Notes: generated from the letters alone by a model not told the origin. Positions 30,926-43,100 are shown, counted from the first letter of the stretch. The stretch is DNA of 64,000 nt from Stylophora pistillata (GCF_002571385.2 NW_019217785.1:838859-902858), one strand, 5' to 3'. Numbers and translations are program-made.

Positions 30926-33900
30926 ATGGGCCACAAAACTTTGACAGAGTGGAAATATTGTCACTTTATAATGGTCATTGGTAGTTTAACCTTGCTCCTT
31001 CTGGTTGGGAGATTTTTAGAGTTTCCCTTAATGAAGACCAGTATAACAGGTAAGCTTGGCAAAGCTGCTAACTCATTAAGAAAAGGAAGTCTTTCAAAAA
31101 AGTTCACAAGTAAAGGTATAGAGTGTTAATTACATCGCTGAAAGAAAAACAAAACGCATATTCGTGCTCTTTAAAGAGTACCAACAAAGTTCCCATAGTT
31201 TGGTGGTGCTACGAATTTGAAGTTGCCATCTTTTTGAAAATTTATCAGGTTTATATTCGAAAACCTGATCGGAGGTATTGAACAAAGAAGTTAAAATCTA
31301 ATTAAAGTGGTTTTTATGTGGCCCCCCAGCGAGTTTTCGTTGCAAACTTTATCATGGATTTTTCAAGATCTAAAGATTTGCATAATTTGTAGATACAGTG
31401 GTTACTAATTCATCTTTGGATAATTTGTCCTTTTGGGCAAGAAACAATTGCCTGCAACTGCCACATCCTTGGAGACAATGACCCTGGATAAAACCTTTGA
31501 AGAGAGCCGAATAACATAAAAAAATTGTGCTAACTATCAAGGCAAGCAAACTATAATCGCAGAATTTTTAATAATTAAGTCCCCTCTATCGTTTGATCTC
31601 TCCGCCTCGTGAGGGAAGTTGATTATTTTTCGGTGAATTAGAACAGCAAATTGAAAATCAGTGGTGATGGTAACACACGCTAACAACTCAGTTAAGGGTC
31701 TTTTCATCGATAAAAAGTTTTTTTAAATTTTAATCAGTTGAGTTGAAGAATATTCCCTTGAATTAAAAAGCTTCTCTTTCAGAGTATTCCTGTATTACCT
31801 TGGAATATTCAGCGTAGCTGATCACAAATGGTCTTTATTTTAACTCTATCACTCTCCGGAGTGTTCAAGGAGTAATTTCACTTTATAATATCGATACACT
31901 GTTAAGCGGACGGGCCATGAGAATATAAAAAAAAACTGAGGTATATCACTTGATTAAAAAAAAACAAATTCTTAAGACTAATATTATAAGAAATGTAAAG
32001 TAGAAAGTAAGAAAGAGTGCTAGTTAGATTTAAGAAATGAAAGGTTCAAAGGCCCGCTAATCTTTCTTTCGAAACACGTGACGGAAGTGGAATCCAAGAG
32101 CCAACAGAAGTTGTTCAAAGCTCTTAGAAGTGCGCCACTTTTTATTCCAAGTTGTGTTGTGTACCGTTATCATACAGACTCTCTGCGTTTATTTTTTTAA
32201 AGGAATACAACACTATCAGTTTGGGGGTTCCTGAAATATACTCAGGTTCTCCATTTAAATAGTAAACATACATTCATAAAATCTTGCTTTGTACAGGACA
32301 TTTTGTCATTCACCAGCATGGGACCACAAGGAATAAAACGGTATCTATTTGTCTCTTGGTTAGGATCTCTTCTAACAATGTTTTATTTCGTGTAAATTGA
32401 CAACCTTTAGAATCATCATGAATAAGAGAAATGGGTTAAGAGCGAAACCAAACGTAGTTTTTTACTGTAGCTCTAGTCGCCATGGTGGAGGCGCTGTGGC
32501 CTCATGGTTAGTCCGCTCGACTCCGGATCGAGTGGTCAGGGTTCGAGCCCCGGCCGGGACATTGTGTTGTTCTGAGGCAAGACACTTTACTCTCACAGTG
32601 CCTCTCTTCACCCAGGTGTATAATTGGGTACCGGCAATTTAATGCTGGGGGTAACTCTGCGATGGACTGGTATCCCATCCAGGGGGGAGTAGAAATACTC
32701 CTAGTCGCTTCATGCTACAGAAACCGGAGTTAAGCACCGGCCTAATGGGCCACTAGGCTCGTCAACAGACTTAACGTTTTTACCTAGTCGCCATGACTTC
32801 GTGGCGGAAAGTAAAATTTCTCTGTCTAAAACACTAGAATACCCTCCCTAGTCTACGCTTTTCCCTTGTAACTTTCGTGGAAATTCAGCTTTAAAAGGTG
32901 ATGTGTGAAAATACTGGGCTGAAGATAATTTTCCATGCAGCTGGAGTTCTGACAGATTGTTTTGTTACTTGAAGTTGGATAATCGGACACTCAAGGTACC
33001 CTTTTTCGCGTTACCGGCTTACTTATACTATATCTATATATATATACACTTACACAAATAAGTAGTCCACATAGCACTCCTAACATTTGAACTGTTTCAG
33101 TTTCATTTTTTTTGTGTGCTCTCTGTCACACGTGAGTACTGTTTTTACTTTTGTAACAGTCAAACACAACCGTAGTGGTTAATGATATCTTCACAAGATC
33201 CGCCAAAACACAAGCAATGAGAAAGGGACTCCTGACGGATTACTGCAGGACATATTCTGGAAATCAAGAACTACCCGATAAACAACGACTTGGACAACTT
33301 CTTGTCGACGATAACAACAATTACATCTACTGCGCTGTTCCTAAGGTTGCCAGCACGACAATTAAGGGAATCTTGTTCAGTTTGCGTAATGACAGCCATA
33401 AAGTTAGGAAGTTTTCCGTGCATACGCCGAGTTTGTGGCAACACATGAGTCAGTTCAATATAACGGAAAACTCAAAACGTCTAGCGACGCATTTCAAGTT
33501 CCTCTTTGTACGTGAGCCATTTGACCGTTTACTGTCTGCCTACAAAGACAAATTCTGCGGGAATAATCGAATTTACACGAATGGTTATCGCCGAATGATA
33601 GTCCAGGCATTCAGACCTCAAGATACTGAAACAATCGGCACGACTGCTAACAACGTGACTTTCAATGAATTTCTCAGGTACATTTTAACCTATCCTGATT
33701 ACCTCATCTCTCGCGATGACCACTGGAAACAATACAGACATCTTTGTTTCCCTTGTATCATCCAATACGATTTCATCGGCCATTATGAGACGTTAGAGGA
33801 TGACGCCATTTACTTACTAAAAATGGCGGGAATTGACAACGTGGTTTTCCCGCCAATTCACTCGTCAGGAGCTGACGAAGATTTTCTCAAGTTTTACTCC

Positions 33901-34047
33901 CAAGTTCCACTCCAGCTTATTTTTAGAATAGGAGAAATTTTTAGGAAAGATTTTGAAATGTTTGGTTATTCGTTCCCTGGACCCTTGAAAGAATTACTCT
34001 CAAATTATACTCTGAATATTAACTCTGATTCTTTAAAACACAAGTAA
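30926..34047 (+). CDS. Carbohydrate sulfotransferase (CHST11/HNK-1ST family, Sulfotransfer_2), type II membrane protein; 3 exons
   Basis: Exons 30926-31049 (TM anchor), 32297-32340 and 33160-34047, with consistent phases 1 and 0. 5'-PSB YCAVPKVAST, 3'-PB FVREPFDRLLSAYKDK, and HW...LCFPC...YDFIGHYETLEDDA. Confidence 0.92.
32485..32783 (+). mobile_element. Full-length tRNA-derived SINE with CORE-like body and 12-bp target-site duplication
   Basis: A box tggcctcatgg and B box ggttcgagccc. Body ggcaagacactttactctcacagtgcctc...tgtataattggg. TSD ctagtcgccatg at 32473-32484 and 32784-32795. Confidence 0.9.
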
Positions 34048-34325
34048 GGCTATGATCCACTGATGAGTTCTACGTAGGTTACGGCGACGCGGAAAAAGAG
34101 AGCTTATTCGTAAGATTGATTAACATATTATCTTTGCTGGTATCATTTCCTGCTCCATGCATTAGGAAGTCAAACCAAACAATTGTCAAGGTTACTAAAA
34201 ATTCAAATTACATTTTTTTGTGGAGACACAGATGGCAAAGTTTCAACCGTGGAATCTTAAGGGAATTTTTTCAGGCTAACTAAAACTGGCATTTGCGATC
34301 TGTCTCGTGGATGTGGAAAATAAAG

Positions 34326-35609
34326 TCACTTCTTGAAGAAATCAGATATTATTCTCTGGTTGTTTGGTGTTGTACATTTCTTTTGATTTTTCGAGATTGG
34401 TGATGCGGGATACTTTTTCTTGGGAGAAATTAAACCTGCTCGACTTGAAGTTCGTTTGGTGGCCATACCAGACGAGCACAATTTCGACTCCTCGAGGGGT
34501 GATATGGGACGTTTGCTTTCAGACTCTCTGGACTCCATTGTAGCAAATGAGATGGTTTCAGACACCCTAACCTCGTCGCCTTTTCCAATGGCCACCGTAT
34601 CAAGTAAATCTTTCTGATTTAGAGCCGAATTTCTTGAAACGGAACTTTCCTTCTTCTGTTCGTCTGATGTTGTAGGGACTCTTGAACAGAATCGTAACAT
34701 GCCAGTGTTGGAGATCTTGCTTTTCCAATCGTAAGCCATACTTCCTATTTCCTTTGTCAAATTCTTTGAGTTAATAATCGGCTAAAAATGAACATAAACA
34801 GATGTGTCACCTGAAAAGCTCTGCGAATTTTTCCCGCATCCATTCTTATTTAAATCATTTAGCCTAGATGAGTGTTTAAATTAAGAAACCATATACTAAT
34901 TTTATCAAAAAATGGGAATTTTTCCTCAGGTAAGCTACAACTCATATACACTAGAGATAACCGAATGTAAAATAATCAGGGGAATAGGAAAAATGACTTG
35001 AAACACAAATCTCAGATCAAAAGCTCCTGACCCAACCTGATCTTCGTGATCTGTTCCCCACATAAAATAAATTGGTCCTTGTAATGAATTCTGCAATTCA
35101 GGCAAGCGTATGCGCTCTCCCCAACTGTGGATACAAAACAATTCCTTGTTTAGAGGAAGTTATGAGTGAGGTTACCACCTCTCTCGTTAAGGCAAATGCG
35201 AAACATTTTGTCTCCCCAAATTTTAAGACCCGGGATCAGATTTCTCTTTTAAGGTGAAACGCAGAAAAAAACAGAGCTCCAAAAAACTTTGGATGGAATG
35301 AGGAGAGGAAGAGGATTTGGACCACTGCTGGGCGCGTTATAACACTCATGTAAACAATTTTGATACCAAACATAGGACTACCGTAAGGAGCAAGATTCAT
35401 AAATATATTGACAAAGATAGCAACGGCTCTTACAAACCTCTTTATCTCCTCTTCACTCAATACCCGATGTTTCCCAACTCTGCGATGCACGCGGACATAA
35501 GCAAAGTCACATGAACCAAGTGCCATGATAATCGGTACCACTCCTCCACGACCAGACCCCTGCCAAAAGAAGTAATTCTTTTTCTCAGAAGACTCACGAA
35601 GATGTCCAA

Positions 35610-35642
<33 letters not shown>

Positions 35643-38600
35643 GCTCACCCCAACAAGACTTGTTATGCTTAGGATGAACACAAAAGAGTAATGAAACCTG
35701 CAAAAATTTAACAACGAAGGTAGCTGTGGGGAAACGTTTCTTTTTCAGAGTTGGTGTTTCAATGGATCAGTAGAACAATACCTCAAAGTAAGAATCTATT
35801 AAATACTTAAAAAGAAACCATAATATGTTTCCTAGTAAAATAAACGTTCTTTAAGACAAATAACTCTGCAACCTGACATGCACATGCTACTTGTAAAATA
35901 TACATGTTGCAGGTAATTTTTTTTTCTAAGGTAAATTTAATTTTTCACTTGGTACAATTTTTTAACCTAGGTAATTTTGCACCACAATATTTTTTTCACT
36001 TGCTATGGAGTAACTAACTCTTTATTTATTGATAACAATGATAGAGATATTGGATTTTGTCAAGATAAGAATATAATAATCTGAGAGAGCAAGATCTTCA
36101 CTGCAATTAGCCTGATTCTGTCAAATATACCAACAAACAATGGGATATTAAACTCCTAATAAGCATTTTTGTCTTTTCTGCTGCTCTGAGGTGAAAAGTA
36201 CTCTTCAATCACTTCTAAACTAACTGATCAATGCACAACATTATATATTATATAATAAATCACAATATATCATCTTAATCTGAGATATGTGTACCCTGAA
36301 TAACCCCACTGTAACTATCATCAACTGCATTTGAACGTCAGGATAAATAACAGTACCTTGCCTTGTCCCTCAGCTGATTTGTTCTTTTCAACATAGAGCT
36401 GTAGACAGGTTGGACAATGAATTTCAGAATACAAAAATGAAAGCATGTTATGATACATTCCCACAACGATCTTTCAAAGTTGAAACAACAAACCAAGATC
36501 TCTAATATGTCAAAGGTTGTTGTCTAACACCTGCTTAAACAACTTGTCTGAATATTTATGGTTTGCCAGATGGGAGGAGCTCTTAATACAAACTGACAGG
36601 ATTGAAGATAAACTTGAGTAAGAGGGCGCAGCTGTGGCTAGACGCAAATCACAGCGACCAAAACTATTCAGAATAAAGAGTACATGGAGAAATTTATAAA
36701 TATGACCAACTTATTTTTTGAAACATCATCCAAATAGAAAGCAAACAGTTAACTAGCAGAAATTGTAGCATAAGAAAGGCAGGTTAAGGATAAGAGAACC
36801 CTTAAGAATGATTACAAATGTTTCTCTAACCTCATTTTGCAATTCATCGGCAACTACCAAACCTTAAGTGAAAAATGATAACAGTGAATAATTGATCTTT
36901 ACCAAAAATGCCCTCTTACAATATATGCATCAGTGTGGATGGTAATTCAACAAAATTCAGGCTGCAATGGAAAAGCAACCAGGATTTAAATTTATGAGTA
37001 GAATAATAAAGTCAAAAAGTTCTAGCACCCAAACCGCTAGAACATGTCTTGGTTTCCATAGCATAGAGGGGAATTATAGAAGTACTTCTGTTGCCTATGA
37101 TGGGGCACTGATCAATCCCAAATTACCATGTATATATCTCCATCTGAACTGGCAACTCTCTGGCACTTATTTCTGGATGTATTTCAAGAAATATAGAAGC
37201 AGGATAGCAGCGTAACATAAAAGGATAGTATCATCTACATCTGAGTGAAAAACATCTCAGGTCATCAAACTCTAACCAAAGAATTCTTTGATTTCTGATC
37301 TGTCATTTATATTCATGGTCGGGGAGGGGAATTTGTGAAAGTTCAGTGTCATACATTTGTACACAACACTAGTATAGCCCAACCTAGAAACTTAGGACCT
37401 TTTGATCTAGAGTCCAACATGCTAAACATTTGGTCACCAAGATTCCCGCTTAGGAGAGGTGCTAATGTATTAAGGGCATAATAACATCTCAAAAGTACTC
37501 CCATTCTCCTCAGTTCTGGAGCAAACATTTGGTGCCATTCATTCTTCTAATTTTCTTTATTTCAAACTTCAGGTTACTGTACTCACCAATATTGTGCTTT
37601 TTCAACCAGTCCAAGGTTGTATGTAAATTCTCAGTTGTAAACCAAATTCTTGAGCGAAACTCTACAGCCATAGGATAATTTGTTTCAAGAAATTTTCTAC
37701 ACTCAATGACGTGCTCCTTATTTTCATTGGTAGGATGGAAACCTAAGTGAAACTAGAGGATGCAAAGTGATTTTATAAACAAACAAAGAGATAACTACAA
37801 AAATTGAGCTGCACATTCATTTCCCCTGTTCTTGGACGCTGCATTGTTTAGTTACATCACACTTTACACCACTGATTCAAATGGTTTTCTTTTTTGCCCT
37901 TAAATTTTTTCCCAGTTTTGATTAATTGATAAAATTGATAAGAAGACTTGGCATACATAGTTCTGTCTGTAATCATGCTTACTTTGTGTTCCTTTAATCA
38001 CTTTTTTTTTTGCAGAGCAAACTTTGGCCCCCCTTGACCCCAAAATAACAAACAATATAACATTATAAATTTCTTTGAACTCTTAGTATCATTTTCCATT
38101 CTAGCAAGATCACAAGAGAATTTAAAGAAAGTGAAAGTCAAATAAAATGTACTTTGATTTAATACAAAAATCTTAACATGCATATTTAAGGAAATATCAG
38201 GTTACTGAATGGCTTACCAACTGACTTATGTACATCTCCATTTCAATGGCATTAATTCAACACCTAATCAAAACCTGGTAAATTGTGAAAATTTCTTGGT
38301 GGATTCTTCATTTATAAATTTACAACTACTATCAACAGCCTAAATTTACAACTACTATCAACAGCCTTTATTCATTACTATCAACAGGCTCTACCTGGAA
38401 AATGACAACTCCCAATTTGTTTTTCTGATGAGCAGGTTGAAGTGCAGAGTTGAATCTGTCCCAGAGTTTCTGTTTTTGCAGAACACTTAATTCCTCCCAG
38501 GTGATTGACACTTGTCCTTTAACGACATTCTCTGGGAGCTCATCTCTGACAACATGGGGTAGTGCCAACATAGAGATTGACTGAAAAACCAAAACAGTTT

Positions 38601-39948
38601 CAGCCTATCTAATCTGTCTGAGGGTTATAACCCTAACCCTAACCCTAGCTCTAGCCATTCAAGATCTGATTGTTAATTCTCTCCTCTAGATGTTTAACAA
38701 TTCTTGTAAATTAGTTACTAGAACTTCATGTGAGATAAGATAACCTCCACCTGATAAGTTCAAGTATTCTCAGTACCTGTTTCCCGGATAATATATGGAT
38801 AACAAAGGGAGAAGTTACATGTTAATCACTTCTGAGAGTTAAAAGGTTAAATAATAAAGCTCTCACTTGTTAGTTAATTTAGCAACATAAATTTATGAGC
38901 TCAAAATCTTTTACTGTGCAAGTCAAGTCTTGTTAATTCTTGGAAAACCAGAAGCTCAAAGATGTTAGAGTTAAAACCCTGACTCAGAAGTGTAAAGGGA
39001 CTAAAATGTTTTAATCCCTGTGAATTAAGAACCGACCCATTACAAGATCCAATTTATCAGTCAGTGAATCCATCTATTCCCCTTGATGAAGTAATATACT
39101 GTATCTTGCTCGAGAACCCAATTGAATAGCCACTACCAAGTTTGAAATAAAAAATTTTTCATGCCGAGTCAGAATATTGGATATTAGGCCACCATGTGAT
39201 GTGTGTCATTTCATTTCAAGTATTCTTACAATACATGGAAGATGTTTGGTCTGGTGGTCAGCACAATGAATTCATCAGCATAAGCCCAGTAGCCCAGTTA
39301 TTACATCATGTTATCAAATAACCTGCATGACCCTGCATGTGCTCTCATTCCAAATGATTATATAAAAATCCTGTTTAAGGGGCAATTAATGTAGCTCAAG
39401 GCAGGGGGTTAGTAAGCCCCATGGTCCAGTGCACAACTCCACAAGATACAAAATAGGATCCCATCAGGAGAAGTAAAAATACTTACATCATCACAAATCT
39501 TCTGCCCAAGGTAATAAATTTGTTGGAAAAGAATCATGACATTAAAGGCTTCCATTGCCTCCCCCCCCCCTACCCTGCCCATCTCCAAACTCCATCCAGT
39601 TGTAGTGATACCTCACTGTAAAATTAGTTCTAAAAAAGATTTTCTCAAAAATTCAACCTCTAATGTAACTCTTACCTTTCTTGTAAATAACCCAAATGCT
39701 TTGAAGTGGAACCTAAAACCCGTCGGTACACACTTCAGCCATTTCTCCACTGTTATTGGACTAGGAATCGCATAGTTACTCGTGTCGCATTCCACACAAG
39801 GGAAGAATCTGGAATAATGCAGTAAACGGTCCGCTGTTGTCTTAACTGAAGCTGGATAAAACCTTCCGCATTTTACAATAGACGAATCCGACCAACCACA
39901 AGTTCCTTGGAGAACTTTCCCCGCGAGATCAGCATCATTCCCCGCCAT
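34326..39948 (-). CDS. DUF72 (UPF0759, YecE/YunF-like TIM-barrel) protein with a disordered C-tail and terminal PIP box; 8 exons, about 454 aa
   Basis: Exons 39948-39676, 38580-38395, 37752-37587, 36862-36831, 36398-36357, 35559-35438, 35124-35037 and 34781-34326; all GT-AG and frame-consistent. DUF72 motifs GTCGWS, FYP, RLLHYSRFFPCVECDTSNYAIP, W...P.GFRFHFKA, LGVVIFQF, AVEFRSRIW, LVVADE and AYVRVHRR. Confidence 0.88.
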
Positions 39949-40152
39949 TTTCTTTCTAGTACCCAGTCTCTGTATCAGTCTCTCTTTGACGAATGTAACT
40001 GGAGCATTGGGGAGAAACTTGATTCCAATATGGTAGACGCACAGTGTTGTTCAGGTCTAGTTATCATGTCGCCAGTTATTGTGAAAAGTTAGTCCCAAAG
40101 ATCCAGTGATAAAATTCAGAAGCCTGGATTTTTGGTTTTGAATTATTCCCCG
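39949..40152. promoter_or_regulatory. Probable bidirectional promoter DUF72 / GORAB
   Basis: Divergent ATGs 204 bp apart. CCAAT at about 40025 (+) and cattgg at about 40005. Confidence 0.6.
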
Positions 40153-43100
40153 ATGTCATCTTGGGCCGGATTCACAGACGAAGAGCTCCTCCGTTTGAGA
40201 CAAACTGGAAGAGAAGATGGGACAGCTCCAGAAAGCCTTAAAAAGTCAGCGATTAACACTGCAAAACGACAACGACCTCGAGAGAAAGTAAGATCAAGAG
40301 TTACGTCCTCAGAAAAAATAGAGTTCGGGAAACAAGAAGGAAATGACGACCAGGGCTCGAGAAATCGCGCTCAGTCAGCGCAGCAAAACCCAGGCTCCAG
40401 AACCCACGGTGGTCATTCAACTTCGCGGCTTGATTCCAGGGAGGAAGAAAAGGAAAATTCCTCTCCAGAGTGTGAAAGGCGGGGAAAAAGTATAAGCCAG
40501 GTAAAAGAAGGGAATGCCTTTCCCGAAGAACCGACATCAGAAACCAAGTCTTTGGAGAAGGCCAATGATCAACAAGGAAAAGCTCTCGAGGTGGATGATG
40601 GCCTTCAAAAGCAGAATGGTTCACGAGCGGATAAAGAGGTGGAAATCGTTCTCCCTAATATAATCGACGAGAGTGATAGGTAGGATAAGGGAAAGGTGTT
40701 ATTAAAGTTTTATTTGATCAGGTCACTCCAACAGTTTCTGGTGAAGGTACTTACCGGTTCGCGAGCATTTTTAACCCACATTCCACAAGGGTAAGATCTT
40801 GTCTCTTAGTGACATTTAATTAAAAGCAAATTTTCTTCTTTTGCCATTGAACCAGTGTATGTAGGGATGTTTTATTGTTTGCTTTCAATCAGCACTTAAT
40901 ATTTTACATAAATTATACAGGTAAAATAGCTTGAATAATCAGGGATTGTTTTATTTTTAAACAAGAAGTGCGGTATATTGGCAGGGGTGCATGAAACTTT
41001 CATGAATATACAATAATCAACAAAAGCAGTTGGAACACGTTAAAAAAAACCGATTTGTTCTCCTTTCTGGCACATTGTACCCTTGTACCCTCCCTCCTTT
41101 CCTCAGGTTTTTCGTATTTTGTGCCAACTAAGCAACTCTTGGTGATGAAAAACACAACATTGTTCTGGGGAATGGGTTGAATGTCAATAAGGCAAGGGGT
41201 GCAATTTGTAATAAGTGTTACAATCCTTTAATGCTCATTGAAGTTGTCAGACATGAAAGAAGATCCTTGAGCAAACTGAGTTCTCTTTTTGTGCAGTCAT
41301 TCTCTGTATCCAAGTGAGGACCCATCCAAGAAGACAAATTATTACACATGTTTCAAATACCATATTTTAATAACTTGTTATAATTATTTTTTTTTAATTT
41401 TTTGCATAGAATACAAGCTATTGAGTTGTCAGCATTGGAAAAGATGCAAGAAAAACAGAAACAGATTGAGCTGGAAAATAAAAGAAAGAAAGCAGCTCTT
41501 CAGGAAACAATAAAGAAAAGGTATTCTTTTACTAGTTCACAAGATCAAAAAATGAAAAGCCAATCATACTGATGTTGGCAGAAGACAATACCTACGAAAA
41601 TGGCAGAAAGCAGAGTGGATGCCCTGAACCATAAAATGATTACATTTTGTGGTGTGAAAAAGTGAGCATGAATAGAGCACGTATTTAGGAGGTAATTTAT
41701 CAAGATGCTTGTATTTAGTATCAATAACCTCTCCAGTTGTTATTTCCACCTCTCTTTTGGTCTTATTTTGCTTATTTTTTGGGTTAGATATCAGAAAACC
41801 CAAGCAGAAGCCCAAGTTCTTTCTTTAGTTCAGAAAGAGTTGAGCCATCTTGACAGTCTCCTGTCTGCTGATGTGGCAATTCTGCGAGACAAGATAGAGG
41901 AGAGCAGTAGAGATTATCTTAGTGCACAGTAAGTGAATGAGTACACTATTCAATTTAGGTTTGCTAAGATGTTTTACTTTGCAGAGCAATTTCTTCTAAA
42001 TTTTCAAGAACGAGTTGATCCCTCTAGTCTAAATTGATTGCACTACTGGCAACAGATTTTGTATTTCCACAGTTTCATTCTTGGCTTCTTTCTGCTGCTA
42101 ATGCCACATCAACAAAGCTTTACCAACGAATATGTGCACGATCCTTCGCAGTAAAGCACTATTTAAGCAATAGTGAAAATCAGACCTGAAAAAAATTTTT
42201 TTCAGGTCTGATTTTCACTATTGCTTAAATAGTGCTTTACTGCGAAGGATCGTGCACATATACGTTTCATAACCGCAGTTCATATATATGTATTTCATAT
42301 GTTTGTTGTTTGATTTATCATCTACGGGTTTATGTCGAATTAATTTGATGGCCTGCTCCCAGTTGGCTTGTTAGCTCAATTGGTAGAGCGCTGCACTAGT
42401 ATCGCAGAGGTCAGTGGTTCGAATCCCGTACAGGCCTGAATTTTTTTCAGGTCTGATTTTCACTATTGCTTAAATAGTGCTTTACTGCGAAGGATCGTGC
42501 ACATATACGTTTCATAACCGCAGTTCATATATATGTATTTCATATGTTTGTTGTTTGATTTATCATCTACGGGTTTATGTCGAATTAATTTGATGGCCTG
42601 CTCCCAGTTGGCTTGTTAGCTCAATTGGTAGAGCGCTGCACTAGTATCGCAGAGGTCAGTGGTTCGAATCCCGTACAGGCCTGAATTTTTTTCAGGTCTG
42701 ATTTTCACTATTGCTTAAATAGTGCTTTACTGCGAAGGATCGTGCACATATACGTTTCATAACCGCAGTTCATATATATGTATTTCATATGTTTGTTGTT
42801 TGATTTATCATCTACGGGTTTATGTCGAATTAATTTGATGGCCTGCTCCCAGTTGGCTTGTTAGCTCAATTGGTAGAGCGCTGCACTAGTATCGCAGAGG
42901 TCAGTGGTTCGAATCNTTTTTTTTTAATTTTTTGCATAGAATACAAGCTATTGAGTTGTCAGCATTGGAAAAGATGCAAGAAAAACAGAAACAGATTGAG
43001 CTGGAAAATAAAAGAAAGAAAGCAGCTCTTCAGGAAACAATAAAGAAAAGGTATTCTTTTACTAGTTCACAAGATCAAAAAATGAAAAGCCAATCATACT

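Follow-up and report, generated by a model that had tools for sequence, protein, structure and literature searches.

In this study, we analyzed a 64,000-nucleotide stretch of the genome of the coral Stylophora pistillata (GCF_002571385.2, NW_019217785.1:838859-902858; hereafter the window, from whose first letter all positions are counted), and found that its minus strand carries, at positions 39948-34326, an intron-containing gene for a protein of the DUF72 family (PF01904) which ends in a box of the PCNA-interacting protein (PIP) type. The gene is real, expressed and nuclear. Comparison of sequences indicated that the terminal QRIISDFFKK of its product is not a chance motif, and that a terminal PIP-like box is conserved across most major eukaryote groups sampled. 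Tethering of the protein to PCNA by this tail is well supported and in our judgment very likely, while a DNA-processing activity of its barrel domain, suggested by analogy, is only slightly favored over its absence. Taken as a whole, the reading of the protein as an old eukaryotic, PCNA-tethered DUF72 barrel which may act on DNA near the replication fork is considered fairly probable.

Gene model, expression and family membership

Based on the sequence reading and a local count, the gene consists of eight exons on the minus strand, separated by introns which all have GT..AG ends and compatible phases. The joined exons amount to 1365 nt, or 454 codons plus a stop, with zero internal stops and the frame kept throughout, and an in-frame stop lies 5' of the ATG. 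The eight GT-AG exons and the 454-residue product proposed in an initial annotation, which had been made from the sequence alone, were thus borne out, and every motif string quoted there was found in the spliced protein. Two DUF72 motif strings, VVIFQ|F and NIG|LVVADE, are made only by splicing, each across a junction. For all analyses below, the exons were searched singly, the joined protein of the window was used for local counts only, and natural full-length relatives served as proxies in searches and fold predictions.

Exon 1 (39676..39948, codons 1-91) contains the start codon and encodes the barrel's first third, with the strings GTCGWS, VECD and FHFK. By itself it matched PF01904 in Pfam with E = 1.7e-15 and 58.1 bits, against a gathering cut-off of 25.3; its joint to exon 2 (38580|39676) was seen in RNA, and an RNA contig reaches 5' to position 40041. 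Exon 2 (38395..38580, 62 codons) encodes an insertion segment common to DUF72 proteins of the Chloroflexota type, up to strand beta-4 (VVIFQ). The AVEFR strand is encoded by exon 3 (37587..37752, 166 nt; PF01904 E = 2.6e-4, joints in RNA), the LVVADE strand with the invariant Asp214 by exon 4 (36831..36862, 32 nt), and a flexible loop by exon 5 (36357..36398, 42 nt), for which the matching part of the model of the Pocillopora orthologue described below has a predicted local distance difference test (pLDDT) score of ~63-65. Exon 6 (35438..35559, 122 nt) supplies the YVRVHRR strand with Arg256, His258 and Arg260, exon 7 (35037..35124, 88 nt) the last barrel strand, and exon 8 (34326..34781, 151 codons plus stop) the barrel end, a disordered Ser/Lys-rich linker and the PIP box. 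All eight exons lie on the minus strand, and a single DUF72 locus was found in the genome (398 Mb, 5513 contigs searched).

The RNA evidence was taken from coral libraries of several studies, with one contig set (X1) and two raw-read runs (X21 and X24) mapped. All seven junctions were seen as CT..AC joints on the plus strand, in X1 contigs and in raw reads of X21 and X24, and the strandedness of the RNA matches a minus-strand transcript, so that every predicted junction was confirmed with material from several studies. The joint of the tail exon, 34781|35037, was present in 1 contig of the contig set and in 4 and 9 reads of the two read runs, and the proposed joining of exon 34781-34326 to the upstream exons therefore holds in transcripts. 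Two transcript-derived proteins agree with the model: a 274 aa protein from the same species (P0164) covers exons 3-8, with 100% identity in exon 8, and a 453 aa protein from Pocillopora (P0154) shows 78-93% identity in the single exons, and its segments have the same borders as the exons. In X24, exon 7 was skipped by the joint 34781|35438 in 4 reads, compared with 9 for the normal joint, and exon 7 is thus missing from a minority isoform; since skipping shifts the frame and brings a stop after 6 codons, the barrel end (the last strand) and the entire PIP tail are lost from it. We regard the gene model as correct with near certainty.

With exon 1 at 58 bits and relatives which match the whole profile, the assignment of the coral protein to DUF72 made in the initial annotation is practically beyond doubt. 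The full PF01904 profile was matched by P0002 (2e-37) and P0154 (2.6e-37) with 129-130 bits at positions 1-216 of 217; P0154 is the nearest full-length relative and covers profile positions 1-215 of 217. Among 140 aligned homologues, conservation of 90% or more is seen in 31 columns, and the coral protein keeps 31 of the 31. The YecE equivalog of NCBIfam was matched only weakly and partially. The AlphaFold2 (AF2) model of P0154 shows a triosephosphate isomerase (TIM) barrel with pLDDT above 90 at residues 10-330, followed by a disordered tail with pLDDT below 55, in which a short helix is present only at the terminal motif. Compared with DUF72 crystal structures, the modelled barrel gave Z 27.9 and a root-mean-square deviation of 2.5 over 245 residues for 1vpy and Z 25.1 for 1vpq, and Foldseek returned E = 1e-16 to 1e-18 for three such structures. 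According to this model and the alignment, the conserved Glu53, Lys83, Gln153, Glu184, Asp214, Arg256 and His258 lie where the barrel strands end or close to it, which is where the active sites of TIM barrels are located.

The coral protein therefore shares the Pfam profile of the DUF72/UPF0759 proteins (E. coli YecE, B. subtilis YunF and T. maritima TM1631; structures 1vpq, 1vpy and 1ztv) and, with Z 25-28 on the orthologue model, their TIM-barrel fold, and the near-invariant residues are all kept. The eukaryotic members, coral included, differ in that a disordered linker, 100-300 residues long, has been added together with a PIP-like box at the end, whereas the prokaryotic ones are ~270-330 aa long and 57 of the 59 sampled are without the box; the coral gene is split by seven introns. 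The initial annotation had also called the factor undescribed. This does not apply to the protein as such, as coral orthologues are already listed in NCBI and UniRef as DUF72 or 'UPF0759 protein YunF-like', and as regards the literature, neither a DUF72-PCNA or DUF72-PIP-box link nor eukaryotic DUF72 was found among 8.4 million papers and preprints. Literature matches to DUF721, DUF723 and DUF724 are irrelevant to DUF72. As a separate observation on the family, one homologue of 765 aa (P0088) is a fusion of DUF72 with a GNAT acetyltransferase domain (PF00583, E = 2.6e-7) and is without the terminal PIP-like box.

The C-terminal box and its predicted docking on PCNA

The spliced coral protein ends in QRIISDFFKK*, and the C-terminal PIP box of the initial annotation is accordingly present in it. 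The box fits the pattern Qxx[ILM]xx[FY][FY], with QRIISDFF at residues 445-452, then KK and the stop (residues 445-454, 34329..34358, minus strand). It is preceded by the intact barrel (about residues 10-330) and, between the two, the disordered linker (34359..34703, minus strand; about residues 330-444, ~115 residues), within which the basic patch ISPKKK is encoded at 34413-34430 on the same strand. By local count, the 134 tail residues include 23 Ser, 17 Lys and 10 Thr, and the basic patches of the tail are SPKKK and KNQKK. In a comparison of coral C-termini, a Thr-Pro site directly before the PIP box was kept in all coral orthologues.

To see how the box is distributed, 1.84 billion representatives were scanned by HMMER with exon 1, which yielded 1957 matches, and homologues were classed by length as long (380-700 aa, n = 91) or prokaryote-sized (250-340 aa, n = 59). 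The results showed that [ILMV]xx[FY][FY] occurs within the last 25 residues of 74 of the 91 long homologues, compared with 0.58 on average and at most 4 for shuffled tails, and in 2 of the 59 prokaryote-sized ones; conservation of the terminal motif in eukaryotic orthologues, the decisive check among those proposed with the initial annotation, is thus far above the roughly 0.6 expected by chance. Among 114 proteins aligned on the aromatic pair, a count which takes in near-identical members of coral clusters, the hydrophobic position three before the pair is Ile or Leu in 112. The pair itself is Phe or Tyr followed by Phe, Lys, Arg or Pro usually come after it, and the end usually comes 2-5 residues on, with 36 of the 114 proteins ending just two residues after FF. 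All five coral clusters carry the box, and Pocillopora, Orbicella, Acropora and Montipora all have the ending QR[MIT]ISDFF. The other holders are the sponge Corticium; Capsaspora (QKAISSFF) and the choanoflagellate Didymoeca among further holozoans; the amoebozoans Phalansterium and Balamuthia; one liverwort, one lycophyte and two ferns among land plants; the green algae Cymbomonas, Chlamydomonas eustigma, Picochlorum and Mesotaenium; the stramenopile Ochromonas; and the haptophyte Prymnesium.

Similar to FEN1, RNase H2B, Apn2 and DNA ligase I, the coral protein has QxxIxxFF and basic residues at the end of a disordered tail, and the PCNA groove predicted for this tail is the same; its catalytic domain is unrelated to theirs, with an activity that can only be proposed. 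A PIP degron, by which the protein would be a CRL4-Cdt2 substrate, was also considered. In the degron consensus, motif positions 5-6 are Thr-Asp and the fourth residue past the box is basic; this candidate was rejected, the coral box having Ser-Asp and the protein stopping two residues past it.

For the complex model, the last 40 residues of the coral protein were combined with a PCNA of 265 aa read from a cnidarian-like metatranscriptome contig (reading frame L084:191-985), which has 76% identity to the coral genome's own PCNA over exon 1. The full-length frame was used because the coral genome's PCNA gene (G000:C220:418820-419164, L082; exon 1 at L082:1501-1824) is split by several introns. 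The interface score ipSAE between tail and PCNA was 0.85, 0.85 and 0.84, in comparison to 0.02 for the best control; this mark was attained in 51 of 78 solved complexes and in 2 of 108 mismatched pairs. The runs had 78% or more of their contacts in common, and the pLDDT of the partner was 50-59. The last 11 tail residues (30-40 of the peptide) were predicted to contact PCNA residues 40, 43-47, 124-129, 208, 233-234 and 250-257, which form the hydrophobic pocket, the interdomain connector loop and the C-terminal strand, as for known PIP peptides. The modelling proposed with the initial annotation thus passed its controls and put the tail in the canonical PIP groove; since many PIP-PCNA complexes have been solved, such a pass measures likeness to them and not binding.

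In three other homologues only, a regex scan of the fetched sequences located ubiquitin-binding fingers in the linker, upstream of the PIP box. The Cymbomonas protein P0160 matches zf_UBZ with E = 1.9e-5, just below the cut-off, carries a UniRef name of the UBZ3 type, and has a CxxC...HxxxH segment which resembles the finger of Pol eta. The Didymoeca protein P0068 has the pattern C-P-x-C-x11-H-x3-C, whose spacing is that of the RAD18-type UBZ4, together with a RanBP2/NZF finger, and an NZF pattern is found in P0069 of one further eukaryote; both NZF patterns have the Thr-Phe characteristic of ubiquitin-binding NZFs. Pol eta, SNM1A and further readers of ubiquitylated PCNA are built in this way, from a catalytic domain followed by a ubiquitin finger and a PIP box (PMC3714560, PMC4652755, PMC11199599). 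The three DUF72 lineages would thus follow the same UBZ/NZF plus PIP modular logic as Pol eta, Pol kappa, SNM1A, SPRTN and ZRANB3, with ubiquitin binding predicted from sequence, while the coral protein, unlike these readers, has the PIP box only.

Origin of the gene and possible activity of the barrel

In a tree of 36 sequences, the eukaryotes form one clade, split from the sampled prokaryotic DUF72 proteins at 100/100. Corals and the sponge were grouped at 100/97, streptophytes at 98/97 and amoebozoans at 97/89, and Capsaspora and the choanoflagellate were placed outside the animal group. A Holozoa clade (Metazoa, Capsaspora and the choanoflagellate), a group which was named after the first tree had been seen, was rejected by the approximately unbiased (AU) test with p = 0.00015, for which hidden paralogy, eukaryote-to-eukaryote transfer or a model artefact in the deep history within eukaryotes may account. 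An old eukaryotic gene kept in corals and sponges, and not a recent bacterial transfer, is supported. Of the initial statement that the gene was retained in or acquired by this lineage, retention is favored over recent bacterial acquisition. Vertebrate, fly, worm, yeast, fungal, other bilaterian and seed-plant DUF72 proteins were absent from the named matches, for which no exhaustive search was made.

The nearest prokaryote-sized relatives belong to Chloroflexota and Actinomycetota, with ~33% identity, and some of them have a terminal motif of their own. Among 52 Chloroflexota-type proteins with at least 8 residues past the barrel, 19 have Qxx[LM][LFM] as their exact ending (e.g., PQPRLL, KQERLL and EQRALF), compared with a mean of 0.06 for shuffles and with none of 45 proteins without the extension. 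QxxLL, QxxLF or QxxLM endings are found in L040, L044, L048-L050, L058, L060, L064, L066, L071, L076, L078 and L079, and four more proteins (L039, L043, L047 and P0229) have SQPxLFPDY directly after the barrel. The holders of QxxLL are mostly in one part of the tree, and they do not therefore stand for many independent events. A QxxLL or QxxLF ending after a variable linker is similar to that of bacterial beta-clamp clients, whose motif QL(D/S)LF tolerates variation and is found at flexible termini (PMC6511837); the Chloroflexota ending is weaker than this consensus, and the likeness is one of pattern and shuffling only. If the bacterial motif is real, clamp tethering would recur across the DUF72 family. 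A wider proposal, that DUF72 is a sliding-clamp-tethered DNA-processing family of bacteria and eukaryotes, in which some members use QxxLL and the beta clamp, others a PIP box of early eukaryotic origin and PCNA, and some in addition UBZ or NZF fingers, is put forward tentatively, and we would place it somewhat short of an even chance.

For the activity of the barrel, the literature offers two clues. In two modelling papers, TM1631 was proposed to be an endonuclease which binds distorted DNA and cleaves it by means of two Mg ions (PMC3828134, PMC4939058), the model being based on Endo IV-DNA (PMC3828134). In a 2025 survey, DUF72 genes were enriched beside polB2 translesion operons and the fold was described as near to that of UVDE (PMC11791011). 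With Endo IV (Nfo) and UVDE, DUF72 has in common the TIM barrel and conserved acidic and His residues at the strand ends. They differ in that sequence kinship was undetected here, that Z is about 12 and no higher than for many unrelated barrels, and that the histidine-rich trinuclear metal site is not evident among the conserved DUF72 residues; by Foldseek, structure comparison and Pfam, no specific link to Endo IV or UVDE was found past the shared barrel. In the mechanism which we propose, the tail would tether the barrel to DNA-loaded PCNA rings or, in those lineages which also have UBZ or NZF fingers, to the ubiquitylated PCNA of stalled forks. DNA at or behind the fork would then be the substrate of the barrel, whose most likely role is that of a metal-dependent phosphodiesterase, specific for lesions or structures and similar in action to TIM-barrel nucleases of the Endo IV or UVDE type. 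The Thr-Pro site beside the box may serve cell-cycle control and the SPKKK patch nuclear import.

Several observations weigh against this proposal. With regard to the tail, Gln is absent from about half of the proteins with the box, as it is from some accepted PIP boxes, and Rev1 or Mlh1 are further possible partners of PIP-like motifs. The PCNA in the complex model comes from another, cnidarian-like organism, and the high score may reflect memory of solved complexes. The RNA depth is modest and one isoform, skipping exon 7, is without the tail. No zinc finger was detected in the coral protein, which has three scattered Cys in its tail by eye and no Pfam match on exon 8. With regard to the barrel, no measured activity of any DUF72 protein was reported in the literature found, the nuclease idea coming from modelling papers only. 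The apurinic/apyrimidinic (AP) endonuclease of African swine fever virus (6khy, Endo IV-type) reached Z 11.9, within a range (Z 11-13.5) that it shares with dozens of unrelated TIM barrels, and five family members gave no Pfam match to AP_endonuc_2/Endo IV (PF01261) or UvdE (PF03851) at E up to 10. Finally, no conserved repair partner was seen among 122 neighbor genes at ~80 Chloroflexota DUF72 loci, where the neighbors included metallo-beta-lactamase (6), OB/HHH_6 domains (3-4, possibly of the DnaE type), DUF1848 (3) and dUTPase (2).

These points give rise to alternatives both for the partner of the tail and for the role of the barrel. The tail may dock on PCNA while the barrel is not a DNA nuclease but has some other activity at the fork or is a non-catalytic binder; its target could be embedded ribonucleotides or RNA primers, sugar or ADP-ribose adducts, remnants of DNA-protein crosslinks, or a nucleotide metabolite. 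In line with this, the next-best structural neighbors are sugar epimerases and isomerases, glycoside hydrolases and MbnB, and not specifically nucleases, Pfam gave no sequence link to Endo IV or UvdE, and RNase H2B, a subunit without a nuclease fold, sets a precedent in carrying a terminal PIP box without Gln. Glu53, Glu184, Asp214 and His258, on the other hand, are conserved at the strand ends in the manner of a metal-dependent active site, and both the published DNA-docking models (PMC3828134, PMC4939058) and the association of DUF72 with polB2 operons (PMC11791011) speak for DNA as the substrate, so that we consider a non-nuclease barrel rather unlikely. The partner of the terminal [IL]xxFF box could also be Rev1, bound as by a Rev1-interacting region (RIR), or Mlh1, bound as by a Mlh1-interacting protein (MIP) box, in which case recruitment would proceed via translesion or mismatch-repair scaffolds and not via PCNA. 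The missing Gln in about half of the orthologues and the Ser or Thr which often stands directly before FF, as in RIRs, would fit. When the box is compared with the RIR and MIP consensuses, the Ile or Leu three residues before the aromatic pair is a PIP feature and not an RIR one, and the proteins ending two residues after FF leave no room for the helix found behind FF in RIRs. Moreover, the coral box is a full canonical QxxIxxFF, and in the complex model its Ile and Phe are seated in the pocket of PCNA, where the expected error is low, so that we hold Rev1 or Mlh1 to be an improbable partner in place of PCNA.

The gene might further have been a recent transfer from a bacterium or symbiont, or a contaminant, with a fortuitous PIP match, as DUF72 is mainly prokaryotic and the nearest prokaryote-sized relatives, of Chloroflexota and Actinomycetota, have ~33% identity. 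This explanation is refuted by the data. The seven spliceosomal introns, the spliced polyA RNA and the Sulfotransfer_2 gene adjacent on the same large scaffold exclude contamination or recent bacterial transfer, and orthologues in Pocillopora, Orbicella, Acropora, Montipora and a sponge, the 100/100 eukaryote clade, and motif conservation far past chance likewise stand against it.

Locus surroundings and implications

The DUF72 gene is flanked by two plus-strand frames. Downstream, at 33175-34047, lies a sulfotransferase gene in a single open reading frame (Sulfotransfer_2, E = 3.8e-53), which is convergent with the DUF72 gene. Since a DUF72 mRNA contig extends more than 250 nt past position 34200, the 3' ends of the two genes probably overlap in antisense. 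Upstream, an open frame of 183 aa (40132-40683), of low complexity and without a Pfam match, is arranged head-to-head with the DUF72 gene at 184 bp from its start codon, and the two may share a bidirectional promoter.

Within intron 1, and outside the gene product, a dispersed repeat of ~110 bp (38742..38850) is covered by RNA to a depth of thousands on either strand, and both of its sides have loose ends. A first look gave 2269 candidates in the genome, at 85-89% identity, and 40 scored copies were 83-89% identical. The repeat is probably a SINE- or MITE-like element (short interspersed nuclear element or miniature inverted-repeat transposable element) present in many transcripts, and the RNA depth in intron 1 is due to it. 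An RNA gene as the source of this depth was rejected, as Rfam on 34000-40400 gave one sub-threshold long noncoding RNA (lncRNA) match only. The same intron contains, at 38640-38660, a telomere-like (TTAGGG)3 followed by its partial complement. In intron 5, a run of ~31 A on the minus strand is present at 35602-35648; like the telomere-like stretch, it was passed over as repetitive in the read mapping. In the same intron, RNA in the opposite read orientation was seen at 35776-36169, with a contig depth of 20-40 and loose ends at 35900-36003; this RNA probably represents a further repeat or an antisense transcript.

DUF72 is a large family for which structures have been available from 2004-2005, and a clamp-docking tail is a concrete and cheaply testable clue to its function. 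Such a tail indicates the site of action, namely DNA-loaded PCNA at forks or repair patches, and with it which substrates to try. The finding points towards a link between the uncharacterised DUF72 family and replication-coupled DNA repair, and if true, would give the PCNA toolbelt a new catalytic fold. If the whole family is clamp-tethered as tentatively proposed, it would have been overlooked through its absence from the named vertebrate, fly, worm, yeast and seed-plant matches. The repair activity would be one kept by corals, sponges, algae, ferns and many protists, with the usual model animals not among the named matches, and for corals, which live under strong ultraviolet and oxidative stress, such a factor would be of physiological interest.

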